IMG/VR virus record: IMGVR_UViG_3300030107_006644
Location: 141,518 to 205,517 of that record
Length of the DNA: 64,000 nucleotides
Reading direction: 5' to 3' (one strand)
Below the pieces are notes generated by a model. The model was not told the DNA's origin. It saw only the letters and a list, made by a program, of their open reading frames with translations, and did not search any database. The translations under genes were made by a program, and so were the position numbers. The stretch's first letter is position 1. Every line of letters starts with the position of its first letter. Shown here piece after piece: positions 18,949 through 49,471 of the stretch.

Positions 18949-19098
18949 ATGGAAATCGGTACTATTGTTCAACACTTTGTGTGTGATTATCGAGGTCGAA
19001 TCGTGGCCATGGCCAATGGTCTGGTTCACGTCCTTGTCGATGGCGTTGGCGTTGTGGAAGATCGTGTTGAGAACTTTGTCTTGTCCGAAGCGGCTTGA
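18949..19098 (+). CDS. MKVGDLV-family SH3/KOW-like protein (49 aa, not in the ORF track)
   Basis: MEIGTIVQH...GRIVA...VHVLV; GGAG SD; stop lies in P3 box 1. Confidence 0.7.
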   Translation: MEIGTIVQHFVCDYRGRIVAMANGLVHVLVDGVGVVEDRVENFVLSEAA

Positions 19099-19149
19099 CA
19101 TTTTCTTGACAGGAAACCACTTGACGAATGAGCGTTTGGTGAGTATATT
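19095..19149 (+). promoter_or_regulatory. Triple-box promoter element P3
   Basis: TTGACA 19095, TTGACA 19106, TTGACG 19121, 17 bp, TATATT 19144. Confidence 0.9.
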
Positions 19150-19779: not shown

Positions 19780-19917
19780 ATGGCTAAGAAGAAAATCAAA
19801 ACCATCAAACCTCGCAACTGGCTGGCGCTTCATGCCCGTCGTCGTCGCGGTGGTCCGATGAGGGATCGAAAGAAGGCAGCGAACAAGAAGGCATGCCGTG
19901 GGAGAGTCCATGCATAA
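19780..19917 (+). CDS. Small highly basic protein (45 aa, not in the ORF track)
   Basis: MAKKKIKTIKPRNWLALHARRRRGGPMRDRKKAANKKACRGRVHA; GGAG SD. Confidence 0.65.
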   Translation: MAKKKIKTIKPRNWLALHARRRRGGPMRDRKKAANKKACRGRVHA

Positions 19918-20230
19918 GAAGCTGATCGGAGCACTCGTTCGGTTCTTGCCTGTTGGCAACTATCATGAGTTTCACAATGCTGTGGGTATGGTGACTTCGC
20001 ATAATAAACCTTCACATGTTCGCGTCAAGTGGATCAAGCCTGTTCACTATGCCGTTCACAGCGAACACTACAAGTTTCATGGACCGGCGACGGTTTCGGA
20101 CTTTGACCTCGACCGGCTTGAAGTGATCAGTAGCGTACTTAGTGACGAGCAGCTTGAAAGCGTTGTCGGTGGTATGAGTCCAGAAAGTTTTAGTAACTGG
20201 CGAGCGGAGAAGTTAAATGAAAGTCGGTGA
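19910..20230 (+). CDS. MKVGDLV-family SH3/KOW-like protein
   Basis: LIGALVRF...VGMVT...VRVKW...RLEVIS; ends NESR overlapping the next start. Confidence 0.7.
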   Translation: MHKKLIGALVRFLPVGNYHEFHNAVGMVTSHNKPSHVRVKWIKPVHYAVHSEHYKFHGPATVSDFDLDRLEVISSVLSDEQLESVVGGMSPESFSNWRAEKLNESR

Positions 20231-20387
20231 TTTGGTTTGGATTGATTGGAATAGTTACCCAGAAGAGGCGTTCACTGCATCCGGCGTTATCATTAAGGAT
20301 GAGGGATTTAGCTTCTTTAGGGTCTTGTTTAACGGTGAGCAGAGGGTTTTCCATTCTGATTATCTGGAGGCACTCAATGAAGCATAG
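20217..20387 (+). CDS. MKVGDLV-family SH3/KOW-like protein (56 aa, not in the ORF track)
   Basis: MKVGDLVWI...SGVIIK...FRVLF...YLEALNEA. Confidence 0.8.
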   Translation: MKVGDLVWIDWNSYPEEAFTASGVIIKDEGFSFFRVLFNGEQRVFHSDYLEALNEA

Positions 20388-20565
20388 TGGTGCGCCGAGT
20401 GTGGGCGATCTCGTTGTGGCGCTCTATGACGAGCAGCGAGGACTCAAGTGTATCGGCCTTGTTTTAGATTGCCGAGGTATTGAGTGTCGAATCAAGTGGG
20501 CTTCGCGCAGCGACCCTATTGGGTGGTGGAGAAGAGATCAGTTAAGGGTTGTGCATGCCGCTTGA
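20377..20565 (+). CDS. MKVGDLV-family SH3/KOW-like protein
   Basis: PSVGDLVVA...IGLVLD...RIKW...QLRVV; GGAGG SD inside the upstream gene. Confidence 0.75.
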   Translation: MKHSGAPSVGDLVVALYDEQRGLKCIGLVLDCRGIECRIKWASRSDPIGWWRRDQLRVVHAA

Positions 20566-20618: not shown

Positions 20619-20822
20619 ATGAAAGTCGGTGATCTCGTTATTATGCCTGATCAGAAGCTGCTGAAGGATGAGCCTGTACCTATTGCCGTCGTGCTGCAAA
20701 CAAAGCATGATGGCATCAACCGAGGCACAAGCCATAAGCGTGTTAGGGTTCACTGGATTCAAGATAATGAAAGATCATGGGAGCCTGTGAAGTGGCTGGA
20801 GGTAATCAGTGCGGTTAGTTAG
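20619..20822 (+). CDS. MKVGDLV-family SH3/KOW-like protein
   Basis: MKVGDLVIM...VRVHW...WLEVIS. Confidence 0.8.
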   Translation: MKVGDLVIMPDQKLLKDEPVPIAVVLQTKHDGINRGTSHKRVRVHWIQDNERSWEPVKWLEVISAVS

Positions 20823-21141
20823 AGACATAAAGTTAGTTAGAGATTTAATCCCTCGCATCATCGAGGAGGAAGGAGGCACATGCAACAGTCGCACGGTTCA
20901 CGGGGTCGATGAACACCTTGTCTTTCTTAGAGTCAAGATGATCGAAGAGGTGAATGAGTTTATTGTGGATCCATCTTATGAAGAGGCTGCAGACATGTTA
21001 GAGGTTCTAAAAGCCTTTTGTTTATTAAATGGCTTGGATTTTGATACCGTGGTCAGCACGGCGCAAAGCAAACAAGAGGAGCGCGGAGGATTTCATCGCG
21101 GAGTCATCTTGCAGGAGGTAACAAACAGTGAAGATCGGTGA
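20809..21141 (+). CDS. MazG-like / phosphoribosyl-ATP pyrophosphohydrolase-family NTP pyrophosphatase
   Basis: KLVRDLIPRII...KMIEEVNEF...EE.AD.LEV...K.EERGGF. Confidence 0.85.
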   Translation: MRLVRDIKLVRDLIPRIIEEEGGTCNSRTVHGVDEHLVFLRVKMIEEVNEFIVDPSYEEAADMLEVLKAFCLLNGLDFDTVVSTAQSKQEERGGFHRGVILQEVTNSEDR

Positions 21142-21334
21142 CTTGGTAAGATGGTGCGGAAAAATCTGCGTTGTTACGGAGGTTTATGAAAGCAAGATAT
21201 GGCGCACCGACAAAATGGGAAAGATGGTGCGTTGGGGAGAGATTGAACCCGAGCCTTTCGCCCGAATCTTGCTTGGCGATGAGCTGCGTGGTGTGCCGCA
21301 AACGGACCTAGAGGTAGTCAGTGGGTGCAGCTAA
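21128..21334 (+). CDS. MKVGDLV-family SH3/KOW-like protein
   Basis: MKIGDLVRW...DLEVVS. Confidence 0.8.
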   Translation: MKIGDLVRWCGKICVVTEVYESKIWRTDKMGKMVRWGEIEPEPFARILLGDELRGVPQTDLEVVSGCS

Positions 21335-21573: not shown

Positions 21574-21754
21574 ATGTGAAGAAGAATATAACGATAAGCG
21601 ACTAGCCCTAGGCTACCGCACATGCTTGGACTGTGGCGGTCGCGATGCCAACAGGATCAGTCGAGCGAGAACAGCACAGGTTCTCAAGTCAATGACGCCA
21701 AATCATTATGAAGGTAGTCCCGAAGACCTGTTCGATAAGCCCGACGAGTCTTGA
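21557..21754 (+). CDS. C4 zinc-finger protein (DksA/TraR-finger-like)
   Basis: CIKCEEEYNDKRLALGYRTCLDCG; stop lies in P4 box 1. Confidence 0.65.
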   Translation: MATCIKCEEEYNDKRLALGYRTCLDCGGRDANRISRARTAQVLKSMTPNHYEGSPEDLFDKPDES

Positions 21755-21805
21755 CATTTACTTGACAACTGCACCCTTGACTTTCCCGGTCAGGGGTGCT
21801 ATATT
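21751..21805 (+). promoter_or_regulatory. Triple-box promoter element P4
   Basis: TTGACA 21751, TTGACA 21762, TTGACT 21777, 17 bp, TATATT 21800. Confidence 0.9.
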
Positions 21806-21832
21806 ATAGGGGTAATCAGCAAGGAGTATACA

Positions 21833-22591: not shown

Positions 22592-22856
22592 CTTAGCATT
22601 TTCAGGAGAGAAGGTATCGCAGGACGAGGTGAAGAAAGCGTTGATGGCTATTTTAGCCGAGGACTGGCCCGAAGCCTTTACCGTAGACTTTCATTCAGAC
22701 GGTGGAGGATCGGTGGTTCGCGCCATCGTCGAATGTCACAACACCGACGATCATTTAGACAAGTCCTTGACTGACAAGCTGCCACTTAAGTTTATGGGAT
22801 GGCGACTTGTGATATTAAAGGTTCCTATTGGTCATGTTGGAGTCTTTTACTCCTGA
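22584..22856 (+). CDS. Hypothetical protein
   Basis: 90 aa; stop lies in P5 box 1. Confidence 0.7.
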   Translation: MANLAFSGEKVSQDEVKKALMAILAEDWPEAFTVDFHSDGGGSVVRAIVECHNTDDHLDKSLTDKLPLKFMGWRLVILKVPIGHVGVFYS

Positions 22857-22907
22857 CATTCTCTTGACAACTTTGCTATTGACTTCGACCCTCGCAGGTG
22901 CTATATT
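22853..22907 (+). promoter_or_regulatory. Triple-box promoter element P5
   Basis: CTGACA 22853, TTGACA 22864, TTGACT 22879, 17 bp, TATATT 22902. Confidence 0.9.
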
Positions 22908-22932
22908 ATATGAGTAACCAAGGAGAGTACAC

Positions 22933-23277
22933 ATGGCCTATCTCACGAAAGACGATCTCGTAATCATTCGCACAAGCGACACCACCATTCAGGCGCGTGT
23001 TGTAGACATGCAGTTTCGGCGCTTCAAGCGTTCATGGCAGGACAAGAAGACTGGTGAGTGGAAATACCGATGGAAGTCCGTGCCTTATGCGATTTGCGAG
23101 TGCTTCATCGGCGCTCCTGTCGGTACAGAGTTCTTGATTCCCGGCTATAAGCTGAAGAGTGAGGTCAAGAACGGAGAAAGTCTGCTTGTTCTCCGCGACA
23201 AGTATGCAGCCGAGTTCGATGGCGAGTGGGTAAGTAAGATGTTGGCCGAAAGCAAGGCCAAGCGAGCTAGTGCGTGA
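22933..23277 (+). CDS. Hypothetical protein, possibly a divergent SH3-like fold
   Basis: AAGGAG SD; LTKDDLVII...ARVVDM. Confidence 0.75.
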   Translation: MAYLTKDDLVIIRTSDTTIQARVVDMQFRRFKRSWQDKKTGEWKYRWKSVPYAICECFIGAPVGTEFLIPGYKLKSEVKNGESLLVLRDKYAAEFDGEWVSKMLAESKAKRASA

Positions 23278-23438
23278 AAGTCGGTGATCTGGTAAAGTAT
23301 AGACGCAACGCGGTAGACGCTGGTGTGGGCATCGCTCTCATCGAGGGTGCCAATGCGCGGTGGACGATTCTGTGGTCAACCGGCGTGAGTGAGATCGTTA
23401 GAGAAGAAAACTTGAAGGTGATCAATGAAAGTCGGTGA
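23274..23438 (+). CDS. SH3/KOW-like array gene 1 (54 aa, not in the ORF track)
   Basis: MKVGDLVKY...GVGIALI...WTILW...NLKVINESR. Confidence 0.8.
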   Translation: MKVGDLVKYRRNAVDAGVGIALIEGANARWTILWSTGVSEIVREENLKVINESR

Positions 23439-23604
23439 TATAGTAACTTGTAGCTACGGTATTGGCATGGTGGCAGCAAAGGCTTTGCAGCATGACGGCC
23501 CGCTATTCCGTATCATATTCAACGCTTTCCCAGAGCGCAAGATATGGGTTCGCCCGTGGGAACTGGAGGTAATCAGTGCAAGTCGGCGATCTGGTCAAGT
23601 TTGA
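23425..23604 (+). CDS. SH3/KOW-like array gene 2 (59 aa, not in the ORF track)
   Basis: MKVGDIVTC...GIGMVA...FRIIF...ELEVISASR. Confidence 0.8.
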   Translation: MKVGDIVTCSYGIGMVAAKALQHDGPLFRIIFNAFPERKIWVRPWELEVISASRRSGQV

Positions 23605-23764
23605 AACTAACTCATGGGTGATGCAGCGGGACGACTATGCAAATCCCGGTGTGATCGTGGAAGACGTGTCTGGCGTGAGCACCCGACGCTACCGAGTCAT
23701 GTGGGCCGATCAGAGAATCACGGTCGAACATGAAGGTTATCTTAAACCTTTGACATCTTCTTGA
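23576..23764 (+). CDS. SH3/KOW-like array gene 3
   Basis: MQVGDLVKF...PGVIVE...YRVMW; stop lies in P6 box 2. Confidence 0.8.
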   Translation: MQVGDLVKFETNSWVMQRDDYANPGVIVEDVSGVSTRRYRVMWADQRITVEHEGYLKPLTSS

Positions 23765-23803
23765 CAAGATCCGCTTGACTTCCATGCTCGCCCATGCTAT
23801 ATT
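23750..23803 (+). promoter_or_regulatory. Triple-box promoter element P6
   Basis: TTGACA 23750, TTGACA 23761, TTGACT 23775, 17 bp, TATATT 23798. Confidence 0.9.
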
Positions 23804-23825
23804 ATATGGGTAATCAGGGAGAGAT

Positions 23826-24008
23826 ATGATTAAGGTTGGCGATTTGGTAAGGATAGCGGAGCCCTTCATGGGCTATCAGGGTCAAGTGGGTATCGTTACA
23901 AAGATCCCGCTGACCGAGCGTGGCATGTGGGCTATCCTGCTCACATCCGGCGAGCTTATCGCCACGAGGCTTATGTCACGTATGGAGGTCGTCAATGAAA
24001 GTCGGTAA
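23826..24008 (+). CDS. SH3/KOW-like array gene 4
   Basis: MIKVGDLVRI...VGIVT...WAILL...MEVVNESR. Confidence 0.8.
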   Translation: MIKVGDLVRIAEPFMGYQGQVGIVTKIPLTERGMWAILLTSGELIATRLMSRMEVVNESR

Positions 24009-24174
24009 TCTAGTAAGTGTGAAGCGCACTCATGGCCGAGAGCCTGTCATCGGTGTTATCATCGAGATCAAGGAAGACGAACACAATCGAGTCGCACTTG
24101 TTGAGTCTATTAAAGGTAACTATCGGCTTTATGCTAACCCTCTCGACATCGAGGTGATAAGTGACTGTCGGTGA
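23995..24174 (+). CDS. SH3/KOW-like array gene 5
   Basis: MKVGNLVSV...IGVIIE...DIEVISDCR. Confidence 0.8.
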   Translation: MKVGNLVSVKRTHGREPVIGVIIEIKEDEHNRVALVESIKGNYRLYANPLDIEVISDCR

Positions 24175-24379
24175 TCTCGTTAAAGTTACACGCGCATCCA
24201 TCGGCGTGCCTGTTGGGACATTGGGTCTAATCATGTCCTCGCATGAAACCCGTGGAGACTATGATACTGCGTCGGGCGAGAAGATTCACATACTGCAGCT
24301 TATTGGAGGTGATTTTGCATGGGGGCAGAACCGTCGTTATTTGGGGAGAGACTTGGAGGTAATCAATGCAAGTCGGTGA
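24161..24379 (+). CDS. SH3/KOW-like array gene 6
   Basis: MTVGDLVKV...LGLIMS...DLEVINASR. Confidence 0.8.
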   Translation: MTVGDLVKVTRASIGVPVGTLGLIMSSHETRGDYDTASGEKIHILQLIGGDFAWGQNRRYLGRDLEVINASR

Positions 24380-24539
24380 TTTGGTGAGGAACCGTAACTC
24401 TGAGGGCGGCCTGCTGGGTATTATTGTGGGCTGGCAGGATCTCAGTTATGAGGGTTTGCAGCCTATTATACACTGGTTCGACGGGCGCACAAGTTGGATT
24501 ATGGCGCATCGCGTGGAGGTCATCAATGCAAGTCGGTAG
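24366..24539 (+). CDS. SH3/KOW-like array gene 7 (57 aa, not in the ORF track)
   Basis: MQVGDLVRN...LGIIVG...IIHW...RVEVINASR. Confidence 0.8.
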   Translation: MQVGDLVRNRNSEGGLLGIIVGWQDLSYEGLQPIIHWFDGRTSWIMAHRVEVINASR

Positions 24540-24735
24540 TCTATACAGGTTTGACCGTATCAACGGTCACACAACAACCGTGAATGGCCGGTTGGCGATT
24601 TATTTGGGCGAAGCCTTCATCCGTCGAGACGATGGCGTGACCATCGAGAACCACAGGGTTTTGATGGTTGGGAACACAAGCCCGACGATCATTGATCGCG
24701 GCCTGCTGAAGCACATGCGAGAGGTGACAGCATGA
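24526..24735 (+). CDS. SH3/KOW-like array gene 8
   Basis: MQVGSLYRF...LAIYLG...HRVLM...MREVTA. Confidence 0.75.
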   Translation: MQVGSLYRFDRINGHTTTVNGRLAIYLGEAFIRRDDGVTIENHRVLMVGNTSPTIIDRGLLKHMREVTA

Positions 24736-24905
24736 AAGTCGGTGATCTGGTAACACAGTCGCATGCCGGGAGTAATACAGGCATCATCATAGCCATCGAT
24801 CCCGAAGAAATCGGAGATTCAAAAGAAGTGCTGGTATTCTGGGACGATGGCGAAGTTTGGAACCATTCGATGCGGTTTCTGGAGGTGATCAGTGCAAGAT
24901 CCTAG
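24732..24905 (+). CDS. SH3/KOW-like array gene 9 (57 aa, not in the ORF track)
   Basis: MKVGDLVTQ...TGIIIA...VLVFW...FLEVISARS. Confidence 0.8.
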   Translation: MKVGDLVTQSHAGSNTGIIIAIDPEEIGDSKEVLVFWDDGEVWNHSMRFLEVISARS

Positions 24906-25092
24906 ACCTTGGAAGGTGGGCGATCTAGTCAGGATTAAACGCACTGGTGAGACTGCGTTGATATTGTACGTTGCCGATGCGTCCATCGGCTGCAAAATGA
25001 TTAAGATTCATACGGGCGAGTATTTCGCCCCTTGGAAGTTAAACCTTGTTAGCAAGGGAGCTAACAAGGTCGAAGAAGGGAGAGAGGAATGA
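24892..25092 (+). CDS. SH3/KOW-like array gene 10
   Basis: WKVGDLVRI...TALILY...KLNLVS. Confidence 0.8.
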   Translation: MQDPRPWKVGDLVRIKRTGETALILYVADASIGCKMIKIHTGEYFAPWKLNLVSKGANKVEEGREE

Positions 25093-25442
25093 TGCCGATT
25101 TGGGTTTTTATGGTTCGCTACGATGGCGAAATGGCTTGCAGTACGCACTTGACGGAGAAGGGCGCGATCCTGACCGCGATTGAAGACGTGCTGCAGTACC
25201 TTGGAGTAGAAGACGAAGAGGACGCGAAGAACATATTTAGCGAACCGAGAAGATACAGTAATGTTTCCGCAGTCGAAGCAGCACTGAAAGAAGACGAGGT
25301 TCAACCTCCCGAATGGGATATTGGAAAGATGCAGAAGATGAATCGTGAACAACTTTATCGAGTCTATGCCGGATGGTGCGAGAAGACGTGGGATCACCAC
25401 ATCTACGAGTGCGAGATCATGAAAACGACGGTGACCGGATGA
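25089..25442 (+). CDS. Acidic hypothetical protein
   Basis: 117 aa; ATGA coupling at both ends. Confidence 0.75.
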   Translation: MMPIWVFMVRYDGEMACSTHLTEKGAILTAIEDVLQYLGVEDEEDAKNIFSEPRRYSNVSAVEAALKEDEVQPPEWDIGKMQKMNREQLYRVYAGWCEKTWDHHIYECEIMKTTVTG

Positions 25443-25762
25443 AGTTAAACCTTGAAGCTGCACCCGTCGAGGTTGTCTGGCCGCCGTGTCTCTCGACTAT
25501 CGGAGGCAAGCGATATGCGATCAGCGGCAACGTCTGGATCGAAGTACCGATGTCCACCGTGTTCGACGATTTGCCTCGATATATGGTCTGTGAGGCCCGC
25601 AAAGCCCCTGTGACGGCTCCGTGTCAGTCATGGGAGGTACAGGGTAGCAAAGGCAACAAGTACGCTGTGAGGCTGTCTGAGGGTGTCTGGTCCTGCTCAT
25701 GTCCCGGCTACTCGTTCCGTCGCAAATGTCGCCATATTGAGGAAAAGAAGATTGAAGTTTAA
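25439..25762 (+). CDS. SWIM zinc-finger protein
   Basis: GSKGNKYAV...WSCSCPGYSFRRKCRHI. Confidence 0.8.
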   Translation: MKLNLEAAPVEVVWPPCLSTIGGKRYAISGNVWIEVPMSTVFDDLPRYMVCEARKAPVTAPCQSWEVQGSKGNKYAVRLSEGVWSCSCPGYSFRRKCRHIEEKKIEV

Positions 25763-25937
25763 GGTTGGTGACTTGGTGACTTGGAGGAATGGCCTTGCTC
25801 AACCTCCCGGTATCATATTAAAGGTTTCCACCGAAAGGCGTGCGTACCTTATTTGCTTTCCGCATAAGAGCGTCACCCAGTGGTGTCCCGACGAGTTCTT
25901 GAACCAGTTGACAACCTCTTTACAAGAAAATCCTTGA
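25752..25937 (+). CDS. MKVGDLV-family SH3/KOW-like protein
   Basis: FKVGDLVTW...PGIILK...YLICF; stop lies in the -35 box of P7. Confidence 0.75.
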   Translation: MKFKVGDLVTWRNGLAQPPGIILKVSTERRAYLICFPHKSVTQWCPDEFLNQLTTSLQENP

Positions 25938-25962
25938 CTTTGGGCCTGAAAGACTATATATT
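25908..25962 (+). promoter_or_regulatory. Triple-box promoter element P7
   Basis: TTGACA 25908, TTTACA 25919, TTGACT 25934, 17 bp, TATATT 25957. Confidence 0.88.
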
Positions 25963-25986
25963 ATAGGGGTAACAAGGAGAGATACC

Positions 25987-26181
25987 ATGCAACCCGTGAT
26001 TCCACTTGACAAGATTCTTGAGCGCATGCGCGAAGAGCAACAGCCCGAGCGCCCAGCTTTGCGACTGTATGCACCCGAGCCTTCACCCGGTGATCCTCGC
26101 GACCATGAGTGGCCACCACGCCGGATCGAAGAAGACGAGCAGCCCGAAAGAGGGGTTGCAATCATTGATTTCACGATTTGA
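25987..26181 (+). CDS. Small hypothetical protein
   Basis: AAGGAG SD; EQQPERPALRLY...RGVAIIDF; stop lies in P8 box 1. Confidence 0.75.
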   Translation: MQPVIPLDKILERMREEQQPERPALRLYAPEPSPGDPRDHEWPPRRIEEDEQPERGVAIIDFTI

Positions 26182-26231
26182 CATTTCCCTGACATTTTAG
26201 ACTTGACTTTCTCTCTTCCCTGTGAGATAAT
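26178..26231 (+). promoter_or_regulatory. Triple-box promoter element P8
   Basis: TTGACA 26178, CTGACA 26189, TTGACT 26203, 17 bp, GATAAT 26226. Confidence 0.85.
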
Positions 26232-26254
26232 ACAGGGGTAATCAAGGAGATCCC

Positions 26255-27058
26255 ATGCCCCGTGTGACCTACGCCGACCGCTTCGCTGCCCTTCTCGCCC
26301 GCCCGCTATCCAGTAGCGACCGGAGATTCTGCGAAAGTCTGCGAGACTTCTACCAGCGCAAAGGTCGCCTGACCTCTGGGCGTGTGCGGTGTTTTAAGCA
26401 GCTTGAGGAGCGTTACAGTGCCGAGAGGCTAGCCGAGGCTGCAGAGCGCGGCGGGCCGATGCTCAAGCGATTGAGCGGCCTTCTGCCCCGCGTGGAGGGC
26501 AACAAATGGGCAAGCGGATTCGTGATGAGTCTATCCCAACAAGTTCAAGGAGGGCGCAATCTCTCCGACAAGCAGATTACAATGCTTGAAAAGATCGAGC
26601 GAGAAAACAGTGATGAAGCAATCGCAGCACGACAGACATGGCATCTTGATTATGATGACGACAAGCGTTTGCGTGCGATGGTCGCGGCTCGATACTACCG
26701 GGAGAGCGGAGGCTACTTCCGCGATCTGGTTAACAAGATTCTTGAAAACCCTGACTTCGTGCCGTCCCAGCGGCAGTACAGGTCTATCACCGAGAACAAG
26801 TATGCACAGAAGGTCTTGGATGCCCATTTCGCCGCGCCTAAGTACGCGGTCGGGTCATTCGTCGCGATGCGCTCCAGCGCACCGTGGGCATGCCGTAGCG
26901 GGGCCGGAAACAAGCCTTGCGTTGTCATCCAGACCGATGCCGCTCCTGTCGTCAGTGCAGCCCGAGGAGTCAAGCGTTACAAGGTGCTGCCCATCGGATC
27001 GGCAAGGCCGATCATTGTCGAGGAGCGACACATTAAAGCTGCGAGAGGACTTAAATAA
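26255..27058 (+). CDS. Hypothetical protein with C-terminal SH3/KOW-like domain; paralog of 1638..2255
   Basis: RYY..GGYF..L..KIL.NPDFVPS..QY..IT.NKYA.KVL...YAVGSFV...IVEERHIK. Confidence 0.8.
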   Translation: MPRVTYADRFAALLARPLSSSDRRFCESLRDFYQRKGRLTSGRVRCFKQLEERYSAERLAEAAERGGPMLKRLSGLLPRVEGNKWASGFVMSLSQQVQGGRNLSDKQITMLEKIERENSDEAIAARQTWHLDYDDDKRLRAMVAARYYRESGGYFRDLVNKILENPDFVPSQRQYRSITENKYAQKVLDAHFAAPKYAVGSFVAMRSSAPWACRSGAGNKPCVVIQTDAAPVVSAARGVKRYKVLPIGSARPIIVEERHIKAARGLK

Positions 27059-27061
27059 CCA

Positions 27062-27228
27062 GTGCGGCCCCACCACATATATAACTAAAGGTGGGATTCA
27101 ATGCCTTGAGTGAATCCACTGCGCTCCACCAGTCCCTTTGCGGGATGAGGACGTGAACCCGAGAGGGAGTCGAAACAAGGCTGGCGAGGAAGACGCGGTA
27201 AGGACAGCGATCATCGGTGGGGCCGCAC
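27062..27228 (+). ncRNA. Candidate structured ncRNA, 167 nt
   Basis: Perfect 13-bp terminal inverted repeat GTGCGGCCCCACC/GGTGGGGCCGCAC enclosing hairpins GGATTCA/TGAATCC, GTCCC/GGGAT and CCC-GAGA-GGG; no ORF. Confidence 0.6.
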
Positions 27229-27266
27229 CCCCTTCAACTTAAACCTTTGAACTTTTGAGAAAACAC

Positions 27267-27665
27267 ATGAAAGTAGAACTGACCGACATTGAGATTATCC
27301 ACATTATGAACGCGCTTAAGCTGACAGCCAACAAGCTCCGCGAAAAGCACTCGATTTCTGGTGACATGGAGCAAGCCGATCTTGCCGACGAACTTGAAGA
27401 GATCGAGTTTGACTTGTTTGAGGCTGTCAATCGACGCGATGACGACTGGCTAGCCGACCGAGACGATCCCACAGACCTTATGGGCCAAACGCTCTCAGAG
27501 CCGGATGCTGCCCTTTCATTCGTGCAGGCAGGCATTGACGCCCGCGAGCAAGTTAAAGGTTCCTCAATGGCCGCACAACGCCGGGAAGAGCAGGTTAAGC
27601 GCATGATGAAAGGTACAGCCACACCACGCGATCCTGACTTCATGAATGATCCGGTGGACTGGTAA
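27267..27665 (+). CDS. Acidic hypothetical protein
   Basis: ATG 27267; helical and D/E-rich. Confidence 0.7.
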   Translation: MKVELTDIEIIHIMNALKLTANKLREKHSISGDMEQADLADELEEIEFDLFEAVNRRDDDWLADRDDPTDLMGQTLSEPDAALSFVQAGIDAREQVKGSSMAAQRREEQVKRMMKGTATPRDPDFMNDPVDW

Positions 27666-27677
27666 ATCAAACCTCTC

Positions 27678-27732
27678 TTGACATTCTCTTTACAACTTTA
27701 ACCTTGACTTCCTCACTCATATCGGCTATATT
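27678..27732 (+). promoter_or_regulatory. Triple-box promoter element P9
   Basis: TCAAAC 27667, TTGACA 27678, TTTACA 27689, TTGACT 27704, 17 bp, TATATT 27727. Confidence 0.88.
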
Positions 27733-27777
27733 ATAAGGGTAAGAACGAGTTGAACCCCCTGACTTTGGAGATTTTAC

Positions 27778-28560
27778 ATGGGTAACTATTCTGGAACTAT
27801 TCGATGCGGTCACTGTTACGAGCGAGGCCACAATCGGGCTGGCTGCGAGAAGCTGACCGAGCAACTTGCTACACAATGGAGTCGCATCGAGACTGCGGGG
27901 TATGATGATGACAACTATACTCATAAGCGCACCCGTCAAATGCTAGCCAAGCGTCAGGGGTCTGACCCTCTCACTGGTGAGAGCACCCGCAAGCGTCGGG
28001 CGACCTACGGAGGCCGCAAGTGCTCATACTGCGGCGAGCCGGGTCACACTCGTCGCACTTGTCCGTCGATGAAGACTGACAAACAGAACTATCGCACGTT
28101 GACTGCAGCATCGCGCTCGACCCTCATTGAACGCATGCGCGAGCATGGTTTCGGACCCGGCTCGCTCTTGACTACCGTGTCAAAGGATTGGGAGGATGGC
28201 GAGTACAAGACCCGCACGGTCCCGATGATTGTCAAGTCCGTGGACTGGGAAGCGATCCACCAACGGACATGGGGCAGTCAGGGTCAGGGTGGCCCCGAAT
28301 GTGTCACAGTGCTCCGCATGAATGATAGCCGCATCGTTCAGATTATGCTTCCTAACTGCGTTACAGGCTACGATCCTAGCTGGAATCGCGTTGAGCTTGC
28401 TGGTCGAGTAGAGGACGTGCAGCCTCCCGCTGGATGGCTCGATGCATCGGAACTCGACTCCAAGACCATGGGCCAAGTGGTCGAACTCTTTGAAACTGGG
28501 GTTGCCCGCGACTACTACTGGTGGCAGCGACAGCCCGAAATAGAAGGACAGGAAGGTTAA
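27778..28560 (+). CDS. Protein with two CCHC zinc knuckles
   Basis: CGHCYERGHNRAGC and CSYCGEPGHTRRTC. Confidence 0.8.
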   Translation: MGNYSGTIRCGHCYERGHNRAGCEKLTEQLATQWSRIETAGYDDDNYTHKRTRQMLAKRQGSDPLTGESTRKRRATYGGRKCSYCGEPGHTRRTCPSMKTDKQNYRTLTAASRSTLIERMREHGFGPGSLLTTVSKDWEDGEYKTRTVPMIVKSVDWEAIHQRTWGSQGQGGPECVTVLRMNDSRIVQIMLPNCVTGYDPSWNRVELAGRVEDVQPPAGWLDASELDSKTMGQVVELFETGVARDYYWWQRQPEIEGQEG

Positions 28561-28567
28561 ACCTTTC

Positions 28568-28622
28568 TTGACATTCTCTTGACAACTTCGCTATTGACTT
28601 TTCCTCTCCCCTGTGGGATAAT
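28568..28622 (+). promoter_or_regulatory. Triple-box promoter element P10
   Basis: TTAAAC 28557, TTGACA 28568, TTGACA 28579, TTGACT 28594, 17 bp, GATAAT 28617. Confidence 0.88.
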
Positions 28623-28651
28623 ACAGGGGTAATCGAGCAAGGAGCTATCCG

Positions 28652-29212
28652 ATGACTGACACGCCGACCACTTCTGACCTTCGCGCCCTCAAGCTGACCG
28701 AGGACGAATGGCACTCACTCATGCACATGGGTGAGTTTGATCCTATTCGCGCTCACATGGATATGCTTGTGCTGGCTGGGCTTGCCGTGCGAACGCACAT
28801 TCACCCGCCCGAATGGGATCTGACCGAGGCCGGTCACGCAGCCTGCAACGCGATTGATCTCATCCTCGACTGGGATGACTTTGTATTCGTAGGCGACGGA
28901 GAGGACACCGAGCCTTTCGGCGTTATTCAGCTTGAGAACGCTTCTGATGCCTCTGATACGGTCTTCCTGAATGGTGAGCCTATCGAGCGCAGCGAAGCCG
29001 TAGAACTGGCTTCTGAGGCCCCTAAGCGCATCGGCGTAGGATCGCTTGTGCGCCACCAGCACCACGGCGAAGGTCTAGTGACCGATCATTTCATGTGGGA
29101 TGGCGACTGGGGCGGCTTCAGGATTAAACTTCTTAAACCTTCCCAAACTGGCGCTACAACCTCGATTACCGAGTTTAGTGACCGCGCCGATTCCTTTGAA
29201 CTTGTAAGTTAA
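28652..29212 (+). CDS. Acidic hypothetical protein with C-terminal SH3/KOW-like domain
   Basis: IGVGSLVRHQHHGEGLVT...FRIKL...FELVS. Confidence 0.75.
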   Translation: MTDTPTTSDLRALKLTEDEWHSLMHMGEFDPIRAHMDMLVLAGLAVRTHIHPPEWDLTEAGHAACNAIDLILDWDDFVFVGDGEDTEPFGVIQLENASDASDTVFLNGEPIERSEAVELASEAPKRIGVGSLVRHQHHGEGLVTDHFMWDGDWGGFRIKLLKPSQTGATTSITEFSDRADSFELVS

Positions 29213-29219
29213 ACCTCTC

Positions 29220-29274
29220 TTGACATTTACTTGACAAGATAATCCTTGACCTTTTACCCCCACCGTGCTATATT
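29220..29274 (+). promoter_or_regulatory. Triple-box promoter element P11
   Basis: TTAAAC 29209, TTGACA 29220, TTGACA 29231, TTGACC 29246, 17 bp, TATATT 29269. Confidence 0.9.
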
Positions 29275-29323
29275 TATAATGTGAGCGAGGGATGAACCCT
29301 CGCCTTGACCTAGGAGTCCTATC

Positions 29324-30391
29324 ATGGCTGTCGATTTCGCCACTTTCCGTTCTGTCGTTCCTCATGTCACTGCTGCCCGCTTCCCCGTGCTCTTGCGCGG
29401 TCGTCACGGTGTCGGTAAATCACAGGTTGTTTATCAGCTTGCAGGCGATCTCGATCTCCCCGTTGTGGAGCGTCGAGCTTCGCAAATGACCGAGGGCGAT
29501 CTTCTCGGCCTTCCGTCTACCGATGGCGCGACCACCCGATGGAACCCGCCTGTCTGGTTTAAGACCGCGTGCGAGACTCCTGTTGTGCTCTTTCTGGATG
29601 AGGTTGACCGTGCGACGGTCGAGGTCCGTCAGGGCATTTTCGAGTTGACCGATAGCCGCAAGCTGGCTGGGTTCTCGCTCCATGAGGACACGATCATCAT
29701 CGCAGCCGTCAACGGTGGCGAACATGGCGCTCAATATCAGGTCGGCGAAATGGACCCGGCAGAGCTTGACCGCTACACGGTCTTCGACGTTGAGCCTTCC
29801 CATGAGGATTGGCTTGAGTGGGCGAAGTCTAACGTCGATGGCGTCGTTTGGGACTTCATCAACAACAATCGGAACCACCTTGAGCACGCTGGCGACTTTG
29901 AGCCGAACAAGGTTTACCCTTCCCGTCGTTCGTGGGATCGGCTCAATCAGGCTGCGACTGGTGCGGCTCTCTTTGAAGAGGGTGCCGATCTCGGTCTGCT
30001 CTACAACCTGACTTGCGCGTTTGTCGGCTTTGAAGCTGGCGTTGCGTTCAAGGACTTCGTTGAGAACTATTCCCGTCAGGTCACTGTCGAGGATATTTTG
30101 GTCAAGGGTGAGATTGACCGTACCTCCGAGTTCACGATCAACGAGCACAGTGCTTTGGTCGAAAAGATGGAGGCAACCGAGACTTTCGCGGATCACCTGC
30201 CTTCCGAGCAGATTCAGAACCTCGCTGATTTCTTCGTCACGCTGCCTTCTGAAGTTGCTATGAAGCTGTGGACCGTCATGGGTAACGGCGAGATCCAGAA
30301 CACTGTCGATCTCCACCAGTCCACTGCGTCCGATGGTCGCTCCGTGTCTGGATACCTCGTTGAGCTTCTGACCGGCGAGGCAGCAAGTTAA
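29324..30391 (+). CDS. MoxR-like AAA+ ATPase
   Basis: Walker A GRHGVGKS, Walker B LFLDEVDR, MDPAELDRY, YPSRRSW. Confidence 0.92.
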   Translation: MAVDFATFRSVVPHVTAARFPVLLRGRHGVGKSQVVYQLAGDLDLPVVERRASQMTEGDLLGLPSTDGATTRWNPPVWFKTACETPVVLFLDEVDRATVEVRQGIFELTDSRKLAGFSLHEDTIIIAAVNGGEHGAQYQVGEMDPAELDRYTVFDVEPSHEDWLEWAKSNVDGVVWDFINNNRNHLEHAGDFEPNKVYPSRRSWDRLNQAATGAALFEEGADLGLLYNLTCAFVGFEAGVAFKDFVENYSRQVTVEDILVKGEIDRTSEFTINEHSALVEKMEATETFADHLPSEQIQNLADFFVTLPSEVAMKLWTVMGNGEIQNTVDLHQSTASDGRSVSGYLVELLTGEAAS

Positions 30392-30400
30392 ACCTTGAAC

Positions 30401-30432
30401 GTCCCCCGCTTGTCGGGGGACTTAAACCTTTC
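30401..30432 (+). terminator. GC hairpin flanked by TTAAACCTT direct repeats; probable intrinsic terminator
   Basis: GTCCCCCG-cttgt-CGGGGGAC (8 bp) followed by ttaaacctttct. Confidence 0.55.
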
Positions 30433-30487
30433 TTGACATTCTCTTGACAACTTTGCCCTTGATTTTTTCGCTCCAGCGTGCTATATT
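30433..30487 (+). promoter_or_regulatory. Triple-box promoter element P12
   Basis: TTAAAC 30422, TTGACA 30433, TTGACA 30444, TTGATT 30459, 17 bp, TATATT 30482. Confidence 0.88.
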
Positions 30488-30510
30488 ATATGTGTAGTAA
30501 GGAGATTTCT

Positions 30511-31707
30511 ATGACCGACCAGCCTTCGACCTTCGACCTCAACAAGCACACTGCGCGTCTGCTTATGAACGAGCCCTTCTTTGCCGCGCTCTCGCGCCGG
30601 ATCAATAAGCGCAAGTCCAGCGCGATCCCGACTGCCGGTGTGCGCGTGACCGATGATGGTCACTTTGAAATGCTTTATAATCCTGCTTTCTTTGAGGAGT
30701 TGACCGACGTGCAGCGTGCGGGCGTCCTTAAGCATGAGTTCTACCACCTTGTTTTTGAGCACGTCACTGGACGGTTGCCCGAGGCTGGTATGTCTAAAAT
30801 GTGGAACATCGCCACAGACCTCGCGATCAACAGTCACCTTGTGGGCGAGTTGCCCGAACAGTGCTGTATGCCCGGTCAAGGCCCGTTCGCCGATATGGAG
30901 TTGGGCAAGTCTGCCGAGTTCTACTTTGCCGCACTGAAGAAGAAGGCAGAGGAGCAGGACGAGCAGGAGGGCGACGGTGAAGGTGGCGGATCCGGCGACC
31001 CGTCCGATCAAATGGGCGATAGCTTTGATGACCACAGCGGCTGGGGAGAGGGTTCAGGGACCGCTCAAGACATCGCGAAGGAGCGTCTTAAGGATTCGGT
31101 CAAGAAAGCCGCTGAAGAGGCTCAGAAGGCCAATAGCTGGGGTTCTGTTAGCTCCTCGTGCCGTCAAGACATCCTTGAGCGCATCGCGACCCGCATCGAC
31201 TGGCGCAAGGTGCTCCGCTACTTCATTAAAACTTCTCAACGGTCTAACCGTACTCGCACGGTCAAGCGTTTGAACAAGCGTTACCCCTACATTCACGCGG
31301 GTTCTCGCGTCAGGCGTCAGGCCCGTATCGCGATCAGCATCGATCAGTCTGGTTCCGTTGATGATGGCATGCTTGCCGCGTTCTTCTCCGAGTTGAACAA
31401 GCTGGCCGAGCTTGCCGAGTTTACGGTTGTTCCTTTCGACACCGAGGTTGCAGAGGATCACGTCCACGTCTGGAAGCGCGGAGAGCGCCGCAAGTGGGTC
31501 CGTGTTCGCTATGGAGGCACTTGCTTCAACGCTCCGACCCGATACGTCAATGAGGGCAACTTCGACGGTCACATCGTCCTGACGGACCTCATGGCCCCTA
31601 AGCCAATCGCTAGCCGATGCCAGCGTATGTGGATGACGACCAAGCAGTACGCGGAGCGTCCTTACTTTCAAACCAACGAGCGTATCATCGCTATTGATAC
31701 GCAATAA
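30511..31707 (+). CDS. Metallopeptidase-vWA protein (DUF2201-like), MoxR partner
   Basis: HEFYH (HExxH), WNIATDLAIN, acidic linker, SIDQSGSV MIDAS, GGTCF. Confidence 0.9.
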   Translation: MTDQPSTFDLNKHTARLLMNEPFFAALSRRINKRKSSAIPTAGVRVTDDGHFEMLYNPAFFEELTDVQRAGVLKHEFYHLVFEHVTGRLPEAGMSKMWNIATDLAINSHLVGELPEQCCMPGQGPFADMELGKSAEFYFAALKKKAEEQDEQEGDGEGGGSGDPSDQMGDSFDDHSGWGEGSGTAQDIAKERLKDSVKKAAEEAQKANSWGSVSSSCRQDILERIATRIDWRKVLRYFIKTSQRSNRTRTVKRLNKRYPYIHAGSRVRRQARIAISIDQSGSVDDGMLAAFFSELNKLAELAEFTVVPFDTEVAEDHVHVWKRGERRKWVRVRYGGTCFNAPTRYVNEGNFDGHIVLTDLMAPKPIASRCQRMWMTTKQYAERPYFQTNERIIAIDTQ

Positions 31708-31840
31708 ACAACACAACTTAAACCTTTGGAGGGTTTTGTGATTACTACTGCAGCAGCTATTTTGTTTTGTTCTCTTTGGGTCGCCGCCTTTTCGGTGCTT
31801 GGCTATGAAGCATGCGCCCCGCTCATTCGTGGGGTGTAAC

Positions 31841-32161
31841 ATGGCTATTTTCTCAAGAGACACGCGAGGAACCAATCAGACCGTTATTCAAGAGTGGTCC
31901 GAGGGTAGAAGTGCCAGAAATCATAAAGGTACACTGACCACAAACGGTATCTATCTTTACAGTTACACAGTGGTTATTGGTATCAGGCTTGAGTCCGGTG
32001 TAACAATCGTCAAGGACTGCACTGCGCCCGCTGGCATGTTCCATTCTATGACCACTTCACAGCATGTAGGCGCAGCAAAGCGAGTAGCTAACACTGTCAT
32101 GCATCCAAGGGTCTGGGAAGCAACGCCCGAACTGCATGAGTTCTCCGATGTGCCATTTTAA
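31841..32161 (+). CDS. Hypothetical phage protein
   Basis: LYSYTVVIG...SMTTSQHV; start uncertain (31799 or 31841). Confidence 0.7.
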   Translation: MAIFSRDTRGTNQTVIQEWSEGRSARNHKGTLTTNGIYLYSYTVVIGIRLESGVTIVKDCTAPAGMFHSMTTSQHVGAAKRVANTVMHPRVWEATPELHEFSDVPF

Positions 32162-49210: not shown

Positions 49211-49471
49211 ATGAATTACAGCGATTTAAACAAAGTTACTAGAAAATTTCTTATTGGAGAAAATTCCAAGCCCGGAATACACAGCTACATTCAAGCTTTG
49301 AGCGAAACCTTGTCAAAATTCAAGCCCAAAAGCATGCTTGAAAGTCGACGATTAGAAATTGCAAATAGTCAACTAAAAGAAATTAGACGATCTGTTCGAA
49401 AGCTTGAAGAGCAAGTGAACGTGTTGCAAGAGCAACTTAAAGTTCTAGAAGAGGGAACAGATAATAAATGA
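49211..49471 (+). CDS. Coiled-coil hypothetical protein
   Basis: AGGAG SD; heptad C-terminus. Confidence 0.75.
   Translation: MNYSDLNKVTRKFLIGENSKPGIHSYIQALSETLSKFKPKSMLESRRLEIANSQLKEIRRSVRKLEEQVNVLQEQLKVLEEGTDNK

Follow-up and report, generated by a model that had tools for sequence, protein, structure and literature searches.

Shuffled chains of predicted SH3-like mini-genes in an uncultured marine phage

Introduction

How small accessory genes can be reshuffled between phage genomes without breaking their expression is an old question in phage evolution. It is raised again by a locus in a ~205-kb uncultured marine (Tara Oceans) phage, IMG/VR record IMGVR_UViG_3300030107_006644, of which we analysed positions 141,518 to 205,517. 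This whole stretch of 64,000 nt is referred to below as the window, and all coordinates are positions within it. An earlier note, made from the sequence alone, had described ten SH3/KOW-like mini-genes at 23274-25092, chained by a conserved dual-coding junction, and had inferred a repeat-spacer-like plug-in array in which recombination at any joint adds, removes or swaps a gene while translational coupling is kept. We asked whether the chain is real, which constraints hold the joint together, and whether related phages carry the same genes in the same order.

Results

Genes and joints

The array that the note described is present in the sequence, and every junction sequence that it quoted was found where it was said to be. 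The ten ORFs encode proteins of 54-72 aa which share MKVGDLV...LEVI ends (Table 1). Successive genes are related by overlaps of 14 nt and 29 nt, a 61-nt gap holding a promoter, and overlaps of 14, 14, 14, 14, 4 and 14 nt, so that six of the nine junctions are an exact 14-nt out-of-frame overlap. At every junction with the 14- or 29-nt joint, gene n+1 lies in the +1 frame of gene n. The 26-nt junction pattern with up to 3 mismatches occurs 5 times in the window, against 0.00 expected from shuffles, and the 15-nt start motif RTGMAAGTCGGTGAT with up to 2 mismatches occurs 10 times against 0.33 expected, all ten on the + strand at ORF starts.

The description nevertheless required correction, as the chain of ten is really two chains, of 3 and 7 genes, separated by a sigma70-like promoter, and the first chain is headed by an unrelated gene. 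A profile built only from other phages' copies recognised 9 of the 10 cassettes at E<=3e-6, whereas cassette 8 was weak (E 0.003). Further members lie outside the span given in the note, five of which are listed in Table 1, with weaker ones at 18557 and 19898. The note had also claimed that the same joint links to unrelated genes at 20809, 21128 and 21325, and this joint is also there. Its remark that the interiors share little similarity held as well, since no window paralog hit another by blastp at E<1e-3.

Table 1. Features of the mini-gene region, all on the + strand; E-values are from the family profile and L110 is a related phage contig described in the text
Position	Feature	Size	Observations
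20217..20387	Family member	56 aa	Outside the span of the note; chained to 19898-20230 by a 14-nt overlap and to 20377-20565
20377..20565	Divergent family member	62 aa	VGDLV motif starts at residue 9; E 7e-6; 77% aa ortholog in L110 at 1135
20619..20822	Family member	67 aa	LEVI joint leads by a 14-nt overlap into the unrelated gene 20809-21141
21128..21334	Family member	68 aa	Unrelated genes on both sides, joined by overlaps
22851..22922	Repeated promoter cassette heading the first chain (repeat family D1/D4)		Three TTGACA-like boxes; TTGACT-17-TATATT at 22879-22907
22933..23277	Unrelated gene heading the first chain	114 aa	Stop overlaps the start of cassette 1 by 4 nt (GTGA); no family-profile match; ortholog in L110 at 5659 (85% aa) has different downstream neighbours
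23274..23438	Cassette 1	54 aa	GTG start; E 9e-15
23425..23604	Cassette 2	59 aa	29-nt overlap with cassette 3, because the next gene uses GGC instead of GGT and the TGA stop is lost
23576..23764	Cassette 3, last gene of the first chain	62 aa	C-terminus is LKPL rather than LEVI
23747..23818	Promoter cassette that splits the array		TTGACT-17-TATATT at 23775-23803; the homology block with L110 begins here
23826..24008	Cassette 4, first gene of the second chain	60 aa	GTT GGC at Val/Gly; 95% aa ortholog in L110 at 7072
23995..24174	Cassette 5	59 aa	86% aa ortholog in L110 at 7568
24161..24379	Cassette 6	72 aa	97% aa ortholog in L110 at 7734
24366..24539	Cassette 7	57 aa	Structure modelled (see text)
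24526..24735	Cassette 8, divergent member	69 aa	4-nt ATGA overlap with the next gene; E 0.003; 91% aa ortholog in L110 at 7362 sits between the orthologs of cassettes 4 and 5
24732..24905	Cassette 9, exemplar of a swapped cassette	57 aa	165 nt are 100% identical to L110 4909-5073, from the ATG to the next GTG, with unrelated flanks
24892..25092	Cassette 10	66 aa	Upstream half of the joint intact; seven extra N-terminal residues precede KVGDLV; E 3e-6
25752..25937	Family member	61 aa	Probable TTG start; overlaps the SWIM-finger gene 25373-25762 by 11 nt; E 7e-8

Predicted fold and family

The AlphaFold2 model of cassette 7 has a pLDDT of 95.6 and is a five-strand barrel, with strands at residues 6-9, 17-26, 30-37, 42-44 and 50-54, i.e., a confident prediction of an SH3/Tudor/KOW-like fold. 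Foldseek returned PetP, R67 DHFR, Tudor and Spt5-KOW among the best matches, with TM-scores (normalised to the query) of 0.65-0.80 among the 25 best, although the E-values are only 3e-3 to 0.1. At the sequence level no Pfam or PHROG family matched: the best Pfam model, KOW6_SPT51-2, reached 22.1 bits against a cut-off of 27 for one cassette, only 1 of 120 members hit PF00467 (KOW), at E 0.003, and the family profile against PDB gave uL24 at E 0.024.

The family is very large and uncurated, with 8,223 clusters at 50% identity and 549 unique copies in 1 Mb of marine phage contigs, and the exact joint was found in 95 stretches of IMG/VR contigs. Among the 549 members, 360 have a 14-nt overlap with an upstream ORF, and 233 of 457 neighbouring pairs overlap by exactly 14 nt. 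These loci were collected with the junction pattern itself, and although the 65 directly ascertained joints were excluded from the junction logo, leaving 296 14-nt joints, lineage bias remains. The window paralogs are anciently diverged and under purifying selection, with a median interior dN/dS of 0.18.

Constraints on the joint

The genes are welded by one ~32-nt joint, tgGAGGTnATCA followed by RTGAAAGTCGGTGATtTgGT. In the frame of gene n it encodes strand 5 (L-E-V-I) and a throw-away tail (N/S-E/A-S-R-stop), the stop being the TGA inside GGT-GAT, while in the +1 frame it encodes the start codon and strand 1 (M-K-V-G-D-L-V) of gene n+1. As RNA it is an extended Shine-Dalgarno (SD) sequence, with GGAGGT ending 5 nt before the start (position -6), and GGAGGTGATC is the full 10-nt complement of the 16S rRNA 3' end, read here as Glu-Val-Ile. 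Most of the conservation of the junction comes from these three stacked constraints, whereas the third position of the Val codon in LEVI (-5) and positions +18 and +21 vary freely. The Glu of LEVI is kept in 356/390 copies when a coupled start follows, against 27/43 when none follows. The tail is xxSR only when a family gene follows and is otherwise 0-12 variable residues, so the xESR tail is only a by-product of the next gene's start and its Arg is dispensable. Start codons are ATG:GTG 150:146 in joints, i.e., 49% GTG, against 133:18 (12%) elsewhere, which is only suggestive of coupling.

The note had asked whether silent positions are more conserved than amino-acid and SD needs would explain, and at two codons they are. 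In copies that have no 14-nt overlap, Val3 is GTC in 81/111 and Gly4 is GGT in 99/141, compared with an interior usage of 21% and 30%. This is not a general start-codon effect, as non-family genes of the same phages show 21% and 29% at codons 2-5. The copies are phylogenetically non-independent, therefore any p-values are nominal.

Exchange between relatives

Window paralogs are not each other's relatives, but each has orthologs in other phages. The most informative comparison was with a relative, L110/L044 (hereafter L110), whose core genes are at ~80% nucleotide identity but whose cassettes are 86-100% identical in amino acids to those of the window, in a different order and in different promoter modules. 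Cassette 9 is 100% identical over 165 nt, bounded by the two start codons and lying between unrelated flanks.

Across contigs, 118 cassette pairs have >=85% interior identity, of which at least 21 have an unrelated flank, and identity collapses 0 to -10 nt from the start or -12 to +7 nt from the stop. Alignments cannot place a breakpoint more finely than the shared joint. In every swap examined the two sequences stay identical through the joint, and where the new neighbour is another cassette the joint is regenerated. Among orthogroups, 18/40 have different right neighbours and 12/34 different left neighbours, the same cassette sits behind a cassette in one phage and behind a promoter in another (contigs L015 and L095), and non-SH3 ORFs were found which carry the MKVGD N-terminus. 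Both arrangements were assembled independently several times. Within one phage population, however, the order is fixed, at 99-100% identity across independent Tara assemblies, and turnover is seen only between species-level relatives.

Discussion

Interpretation of the joint

The interpretation in the note is partly supported. The repeats are coding, dual-frame joints, the genes are SH3/KOW-like by predicted fold, and relatives differ by genes added, removed and swapped with breakpoints inside the joints, so that the order across relatives is not identical. However, the comparison with a repeat-spacer array was over-read, since the array is not CRISPR-like: the repeats are coding in two frames and the 'spacers' are genes of 150-220 nt under purifying selection. 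Most of the junction's conservation is explained by coding and SD constraints, and translational coupling is inferred.

What the sequences themselves show is a hyperplastic, promoter-rich segment carrying more than 15 anciently diverged members of a family of 50-72-aa SH3-like proteins, together with the layout of the joint; the remainder of the model, including coupling, the mode of recombination, early timing of expression and protein function, is inference. In this view, which we favour with moderate confidence, the layout gives termination-reinitiation coupling, which would explain why GTG starts are tolerated in half of the joints. Because overlapping genes leave no neutral DNA between them, the shared joint would be the only place where a gene can be exchanged cleanly, and short-homology recombination (about 15-30 nt) between joints, within a genome or between co-infecting phages, would move whole cassettes. 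Cassettes would change context faster than silent sites saturate, therefore joint-compatible codons (GTC GGT GAT) would be kept even in copies that currently sit behind a promoter or an unrelated gene. No recombination event was observed directly, scans of the larger ORFs of the window found no recombinase gene, and breakpoints at gene borders are also what selection would leave after random illegitimate recombination. The preference for GTC at Val3 is not required by the overlap, and cassette mobility explains it only indirectly; a joint-specific RNA-binding factor or an expression optimum could explain it equally well. The proteins are functional, and our best guess is that they are early-expressed binding modules used in host takeover or counter-defence, for which these small predicted barrels in abundant ocean phages are good candidates.

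On this reading the question posed at the outset receives a concrete, sequence-defined answer, as the crossover site, the ribosome-binding site, the stop and the start are a single 30-nt element. The joint is also a natural, compact design for stacking genes, with coupling again inferred. A bolder reading, which we hold only tentatively and consider less likely than not, is that the joint is a portable, self-perpetuating adaptor, a recombinase-independent 'coding attC'. Cassettes whose ends match the consensus nucleotide for nucleotide would recombine more readily into new arrays and new phages, and selection at the level of the cassette would maintain even silent positions across a large pool of marine phages. 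The result would be an ocean-wide shared library of more than 8,000 interchangeable SH3-like binder genes, each plugging in with expression guaranteed by the built-in 10-nt SD and reinitiation site.

Alternative explanations

The alternative that survives best, although we consider it unlikely, is a passive legacy, in which an ancient tandem duplication created the family, the joint is frozen only because two reading frames and the SD overlap in it, and rearrangements come from ordinary illegitimate recombination filtered by selection for intact genes, without a role for the joint as a recombination substrate. This agrees with the coding or SD needs that account for most conserved positions, the free variation at unconstrained ones, the stability of order within a population and the by-product nature of the tail. 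Against it, overlapping genes leave no neutral target for imprecise joins, yet the exact 14-nt architecture is regenerated at about half of adjacent pairs. The identity through the joint in every swap examined, the persistence of GTC and GGT where no overlap exists, MKVGD at the head of some non-SH3 proteins, and a cassette far more similar than the core genes also speak against it.

A regulatory operator is more doubtful still. Here the invariant RNA AUGAAAGUCGGUGAU, together with the GGAG of the SD, would be the binding or cleavage site of a phage factor that shuts off the whole mini-gene set together, the functional analogues being the T4 RegA translational repressor or the RegB endoribonuclease, which cuts GGAG in early SD sequences; silent-site conservation would reflect that recognition and shuffling would be a side effect. 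The silent-site bias is specific to the joint, independent of the overlap class and not a general start-region rule, 533 of 546 occurrences of AAGTCGGTGA lie directly after a start codon, and the genes sit behind sigma70-like promoters typical of early genes. However, no RegA- or RegB-like gene was identified within the 64-kb window and there is no conserved RNA structure. This reading does not explain the breakpoints, and it is compatible with the favoured model rather than exclusive of it.

A dedicated site-specific system, with the joint as target of an unseen recombinase or nuclease encoded elsewhere in the genome in an integron-like or homing-like arrangement, is very unlikely. An 11-nt nearly invariant core (AAGTCGGTGAT) recurs in dozens of different marine phage contigs, and variable joint sites show modest within-genome homogeneity (+4 z=7.3, -5 z=5.1). 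However, Pfam and PHROG scans of the larger ORFs of the 64-kb window found no integrase, transposase or homing-endonuclease gene, no inverted repeat or hairpin of the attC type was found, and the core motif is fully explained as codons. Lastly, a frameshift polyprotein, in which ribosomes shift +1 at CGG-UGA and fuse successive barrels, can be all but dismissed: although successive genes are always in the +1 frame at the 14-nt joints, CGG is the rarest Arg codon (8%) and in-frame fused tandem versions of the domain exist in databases (P0004 with 2 domains, P0002 with 5, and P0001 with 21 matched stretches), every gene has its own strong SD at ideal spacing and its own start codon, a slip from CGG to GGU re-pairs poorly and would delete M-K-V-G of strand 1, the SD lies 17 nt upstream rather than the 3 nt that stimulates prfB-type shifts, and 4-nt and 29-nt joints and promoter gaps are tolerated.

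Relation to described systems

Small beta-barrels of the SH3-like type, i.e., KOW (NusG/Spt5, uL24), Tudor, PetP, R67 DHFR and the B. subtilis prophage protein YorP, share the five-strand barrel of about 55 residues with a G-D-x-V first strand, but no sequence-level membership and no functional site is shared. Translationally coupled overlapping genes of the ATGA or TGATG type are common in phage operons, and there too the downstream start lies upstream of the upstream stop, with the SD inside the upstream coding sequence. Here the overlap is 14 nt rather than 1 or 4, and it is identical in length and nearly identical in sequence at hundreds of junctions in many genomes.

Integron arrays are likewise promoter-led arrays of small, unrelated-looking cassettes, each bounded by a recurring site and differing in order and content between relatives. 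In the present case, no IntI integrase or attI was found in the window, RNAalifold on 30 joints of 80 nt gave 0 predicted pairs and hence no attC hairpin, the site is coding, all cassettes belong to one protein family, and the carrier is a lytic-type phage genome. In polymorphic toxin loci (Zhang et al. 2012, PMC3482391), a short conserved coding sequence marks the border where variable modules are exchanged by homologous recombination. The VENN boundary of CdiA-CT and orphan modules is one example. Those are C-terminal domain swaps within one long gene and come with immunity genes, whereas here whole independent mini-genes are exchanged and no toxin is involved.

The modular theory of phage evolution (Susskind and Botstein 1978) reportedly proposed that short conserved sequences at gene borders of lambdoid phages are homologous crossover points that let functional modules reassort, although later comparative work in lambdoid phages reportedly favoured random illegitimate recombination plus selection. 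Here the border is an out-of-frame overlap, which leaves no room for imprecise joins, and it recurs hundreds of times.

Among the closest systems is the PeSL (promoter-early stem-loop) mobile regulatory cassette of T4-type phages (Arbiol et al. 2010, PMC2839356; Comeau et al. 2014, PMC4122927). In both, short conserved sequences are repeated between small, mostly ORFan genes in hyperplastic regions, differences between close relatives are insertions, deletions and replacements bounded by the repeats, and recombination between repeats is the proposed driver. PeSLs are non-coding promoter-terminator units between genes, for which mini-circles were shown experimentally, whereas exchange at the joint is inferred from sequence comparison alone. 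The joint holds no promoter hexamers, terminator or conserved stem, is about 30 nt long, lies inside two overlapping genes and would preserve a translational rather than a transcriptional linkage, which extends PeSL-type shuffling to a dual-coding element. The window also holds a true PeSL-like repeat, a 72-99-nt promoter cassette present at 10 or more sites, and homology blocks with L110 begin at it.

Genomic context

The array lies on IMGVR_UViG_3300030107_006644, a contig of 205,517 bp, and as the same sequence was assembled independently from several Tara Oceans samples, one of these assemblies being a scaffold of 205,080 bp, it represents a real, probably near-complete genome of an uncultured marine phage. 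The Tara data that hold this phage include ERR594379, ERR599133 and SAMEA2621173. All large ORFs in the window are on the + strand, and they include genes for a GroEL-type chaperonin, PhoH, an asparagine synthase and a MoxR-type AAA ATPase with a DUF2201 VWA partner, alongside a tmRNA and four tRNAs. No cultured relative was found: neither blastn of the 6.2-kb region nor tblastn of one cassette returned a match among 50,697 cultured-phage records, and searches with PhoH and the AAA ATPase recovered only relatives at 40% identity or less. The positions of all features discussed are collected in the table below.

Positions of the features discussed (window coordinates unless another locus is named)
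Feature	Position	Remarks
Promoter within the array	23775-23803	TTGACT-17-TATATT, sigma70-like, in the 61-nt gap
Promoter repeat family	19094-19125, 21724-21822, 22851-22922, 23747-23818, 25906-25977, 26203-26246, 27651-27749, 28541-28639, 29193-29291, 30406-30504	72-99-nt intergenic cassette; three tandem TTGACA-like boxes followed by TTGACT-17-TATATT
Further family members	20217, 20377, 20619, 21128, 25752	start positions
Weaker family members	18557, 19898	start positions
Modelled cassette	24366-24539	AlphaFold2
Core block shared with the best relative	28566-30397	80.6% DNA identity
Composition island	26001-32000	GC 0.54-0.56, GC skew about 0, against GC 0.38-0.50 and skew 0.1-0.2 elsewhere; covers the 267-aa gene, a zinc-finger protein, the ATPase and its partner
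MoxR-type AAA ATPase	29324-30391	
DUF2201 metallopeptidase/VWA partner	30478-31707	labelled 'HNH endonuclease' by PHROG, but DUF2201 by Pfam
Strain-level breakpoint	locus L120 1-133 against about 23617-23749	at the promoter repeat
Acb5 (PF26761) hit	locus L109 7342-7704	Pfam; in the best relative
ORFs beginning with MKVGD but not SH3-like	L043:7300 (+), L036:3332 (-), L039:3245 (-), L018:3589 (-)	strand-oriented coordinates; predicted helical or membrane-like
tmRNA	54371-54707	tag ANNNNHFDSVRLAA
Four tRNAs	56246-56322, 57631-57715, 58051-58125, 58153-58227	Arg-TCT, Leu-TAA, Lys-TTT, Gly-GCC
Copies of the Leu and Lys tRNAs in the relative	locus L044 13093-13258	reverse-complement coordinates
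Very large ORF	4153-9393	1746 aa; M23 peptidase domain near the C-terminus
Very large ORF	35934-39134	1066 aa
Very large ORF	40539-46355	1938 aa
Very large ORF	49468-52047	859 aa
GroEL-type chaperonin	34-1332	N-terminus cut by the window edge
544-aa protein	33457-35091	two MerR/excisionase-type HTH domains
RNase H-like protein	39166-39636	
Asparagine synthase	59911-61500	
PhoH	61765-63078	

Structure of the array

The observation made in the earlier note holds, as the ten ORFs and the junction sequences that it described are exactly where it placed them. Successive genes are separated by overlaps of 14 nt and 29 nt, a 61-nt gap, and then overlaps of 14, 14, 14, 14, 4 and 14 nt, and at the 14- and 29-nt joints each gene lies in the +1 frame of the previous one. 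The 26-nt joint, allowing up to 3 mismatches, occurs 5 times against 0.00 expected, and the 15-nt start motif, allowing up to 2 mismatches, occurs 10 times against 0.33 expected, always at an ORF start on the + strand.

The 61-nt gap holds a sigma70-like promoter belonging to a separate repeat family, which is found at ten or more intergenic sites between 19.1 and 30.5 kb. The chain of ten genes described in the note is therefore two operon segments, one consisting of a promoter, an unrelated 114-aa gene and three cassettes, and the other of a promoter, seven cassettes and then unrelated genes. Further members of the family also lie in the window beyond these ten.

Predicted fold and size of the family

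A profile built only from the copies of other phages recognised nine of the ten cassettes at E<=3e-6, while cassette 24526 was marginal. AlphaFold2, given a 120-sequence alignment, folded one cassette as a five-strand barrel with a pLDDT of 95.6. Its Foldseek neighbours were PetP, R67 DHFR, PHF1/PHF19 Tudor domains, YorP and the Spt5 KOW domain, with TM-scores (normalised to the query) of 0.65-0.80 and E-values of 3e-3 to 0.06 among the 25 best matches, while in the viral library the neighbours were uncharacterised phage proteins. Pfam and PHROG scans of all ten cassettes and of 120 family members gave no significant family, and the profile searched against PDB gave only weak KOW hits. The predicted fold is therefore SH3/Tudor/KOW-like, but membership in the KOW family is not established.

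The family is very large, with 8,223 representative clusters at 50% identity matching at E<=1e-3. Nearly all are single domains of 51-72 aa, and a few are in-frame tandem fusions. Among the latter, P0004 (127 aa) has two domains joined as ...LEVVKQVKVGDLV..., P0002 (370 aa) has five repeats that keep an internal Met, and P0001 (2380 aa) has 21 matched stretches, which suggests interconversion between chained mini-genes and multi-domain proteins. Ortholog pairs have a median interior dN/dS of 0.18, showing that these are functional genes.

The joint in other phages

The exact 26-mer GGAGGTNATCANTGMAAGTCGGTGAT occurs in 95 stretches of IMG/VR contigs of 8-293 kb, mostly from marine samples. In that 1 Mb we found 549 unique family genes, in which 233 of 457 adjacent pairs overlap by exactly 14 nt; 360 members have a 14-nt overlap with some upstream ORF, 75 have a 4-nt overlap, and 69 have none. 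The logo from the 296 joints not used for ascertainment is tgGAGgTnaTcA followed by ATGAAAGTCGGTGATtTgGT. In the frame of gene n this reads L-E-V-I-(N/S)-(E/A)-S-R-stop, in the +1 frame it reads M-(K/Q)-V-G-D-L-V, and the stop is the TGA inside GGT-GAT. As GGAGGTGATC is the perfect complement of the 3' end of 16S rRNA, strand 5 of the predicted barrel is thus written in an extended Shine-Dalgarno (SD) sequence.

Across 54 loci holding 308 joints, the joints of one genome resembled each other slightly more than those of other genomes at variable sites, most clearly in the K/Q choice at codon 2 (within-locus match 0.83 against 0.69, z=7.3). This within-genome homogenisation is only modest and is confounded by composition, and its cause could be concerted evolution or lineage preference.

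Constraints on the joint

Most of the conservation of the joint is explained by the constraints acting on it. Positions with no constraint, i.e., the third base of the Val codon in LEVI and positions +18 and +21, vary freely. The Glu of LEVI (GAG) is kept in 356/390 genes that are followed by a coupled start, but in only 27/43 that are not. The xESR tail appears only when a family gene follows (340 cases), whereas otherwise the tail is 0-12 variable residues and only 10 of 106 end in Arg, which rules out a functional C-terminal tail and marks it as a by-product of the start of the next gene. Start codons are ATG:GTG 150:146 in joints and 133:18 elsewhere, which fits reinitiation rather than de novo initiation, although this is an inference.

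However, an excess of silent-site conservation remains in family genes that have no 14-nt overlap, as set out below. General codon bias near start codons explains the AAA preference at Lys2, which is common to these phages, but it does not explain the GTC and GGT preferences, which are specific to the joint. GTC at Val7 of the same genes is about 5%.

Codon usage at the start of family genes compared with cassette interiors and other genes
Codon	Family genes with no 14-nt overlap, non-ascertained	Cassette interiors	Codons 2-5 of 716 non-family genes
Val3 = GTC	81/111	21%	21%
Gly4 = GGT	99/141	30%	29%
Lys2 = AAA	105/123	50%	70% (Lys)

Two other accounts of the joint were ruled out. A structured RNA element was rejected because RNAalifold predicted 0 pairs, and an independent DNA motif because the 10-mer core occurs almost only after start codons, in 533 of 546 cases. 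A frameshift polyprotein was judged unlikely.

Rearrangement of cassettes between relatives

Window paralogs do not detect one another by blastp, yet each has orthologs in other phages, therefore the arrays are assemblies of old lineages and not the product of recent local tandem duplication. The best relative is contig 3300030419 (loci L044 and L110 of the phage loci compared here), which was also assembled from ENA data as L109, and whose core genes are about 80% identical in DNA to those of the window. It carries the window's cassettes at 86-100% amino-acid identity, but rearranged, in the order 23826, 24526, 23995, 24161, three different cassettes, then 24892. The counterpart of 24732 sits in another promoter module, and a 67% relative of 24366 lies 6 kb away. 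The 24732 cassette is 100% identical over 165 nt, from its ATG to the GTG of the next gene, while the flanks on both sides are unrelated.

Similar breaks were found across all loci, where 118 cross-contig cassette pairs are >=85% identical in their interiors. At least 21 of these have an unrelated flank, and identity collapses 0 to -10 nt from the start or -12 to +7 nt from the stop. Of the orthogroups, 18 of 40 have different right neighbours and 12 of 34 have different left neighbours, and the same cassette is found behind another cassette in one phage and behind a promoter in another (loci L015 and L095). A few ORFs that are clearly not SH3-like, e.g., a helical 50-aa protein in L043 and a membrane-like 66-aa protein in L036, begin with MKVGD encoded by the consensus joint, and look like chimeras made by a crossover inside the joint.

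Both arrangements are reproduced by several independent assemblies, and strains at 99-100% identity keep the order. The differences are therefore not metagenome assembly chimeras, and turnover is slow on the strain scale but common on the species scale.

Interpretation and comparison with described systems

The analysis establishes the architecture of the array, the fold at the level of a confident prediction, the size of the family, purifying selection, the dual use of the joint, the excess conservation of silent sites, and cassette-level mosaicism with breakpoints in the joints. Beyond this we infer that short-homology recombination within the joint causes the mosaicism, since the genes overlap out of frame and there is no neutral DNA in which an imprecise join could survive, which makes homology-guided exchange the economical explanation. 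It is likewise inferred that frequent change of context would keep even promoter-proximal copies compatible with the joint, that translation is coupled, and that the genes are early. The specific use of GTC at Val3 could reflect cassette-level selection for recombination competence, a joint-specific RNA-binding factor or a context-specific expression optimum, and the present data do not distinguish between these candidates. As to the role of the proteins, we can only suggest diversified binding modules for host takeover or counter-defence, given that they sit in an ORFan-rich, promoter-dense region and that in the relative a gene with an Acb5 hit lies a few kb upstream of the mini-gene chains, which hints that the region holds counter-defence genes.

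The closest described system is PeSL-mediated modular shuffling in T4-type phages (PMC2839356, PMC4122927), and the literature searched contained these papers but no description of this family or joint. The joint differs from PeSLs in being coding, dual-frame, translational and only about 30 nt long. The reading in the earlier note, of a repeat-spacer-like array with coding repeats, is only partly supported, as the array is not an integron or a CRISPR-like array: it has no hairpin, scans of the window's larger ORFs gave no integrase, and its 'spacers' are genes.

The window also has a PeSL-like promoter repeat of its own, and homology blocks with L110 begin at these repeats, which look like PeSL-type promoter modules and shuffle whole promoter-led gene groups. 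A strain (locus L120) that is 97.9% identical downstream of the promoter cassette at 23750 has unrelated sequence upstream of it, with a minus-strand ORF, i.e., a strain-level breakpoint at the promoter repeat.

Other features of the window

Another rearrangement concerns the tRNA genes, as in L044 copies of the Leu and Lys tRNAs sit just downstream of the AAA ATPase gene, about 0.7 kb before the DUF2201 gene, instead of 27 kb away. The four very large ORFs have almost no family matches, the only hit being the M23 peptidase domain in the first, which is possibly a tape-measure or ejection protein.
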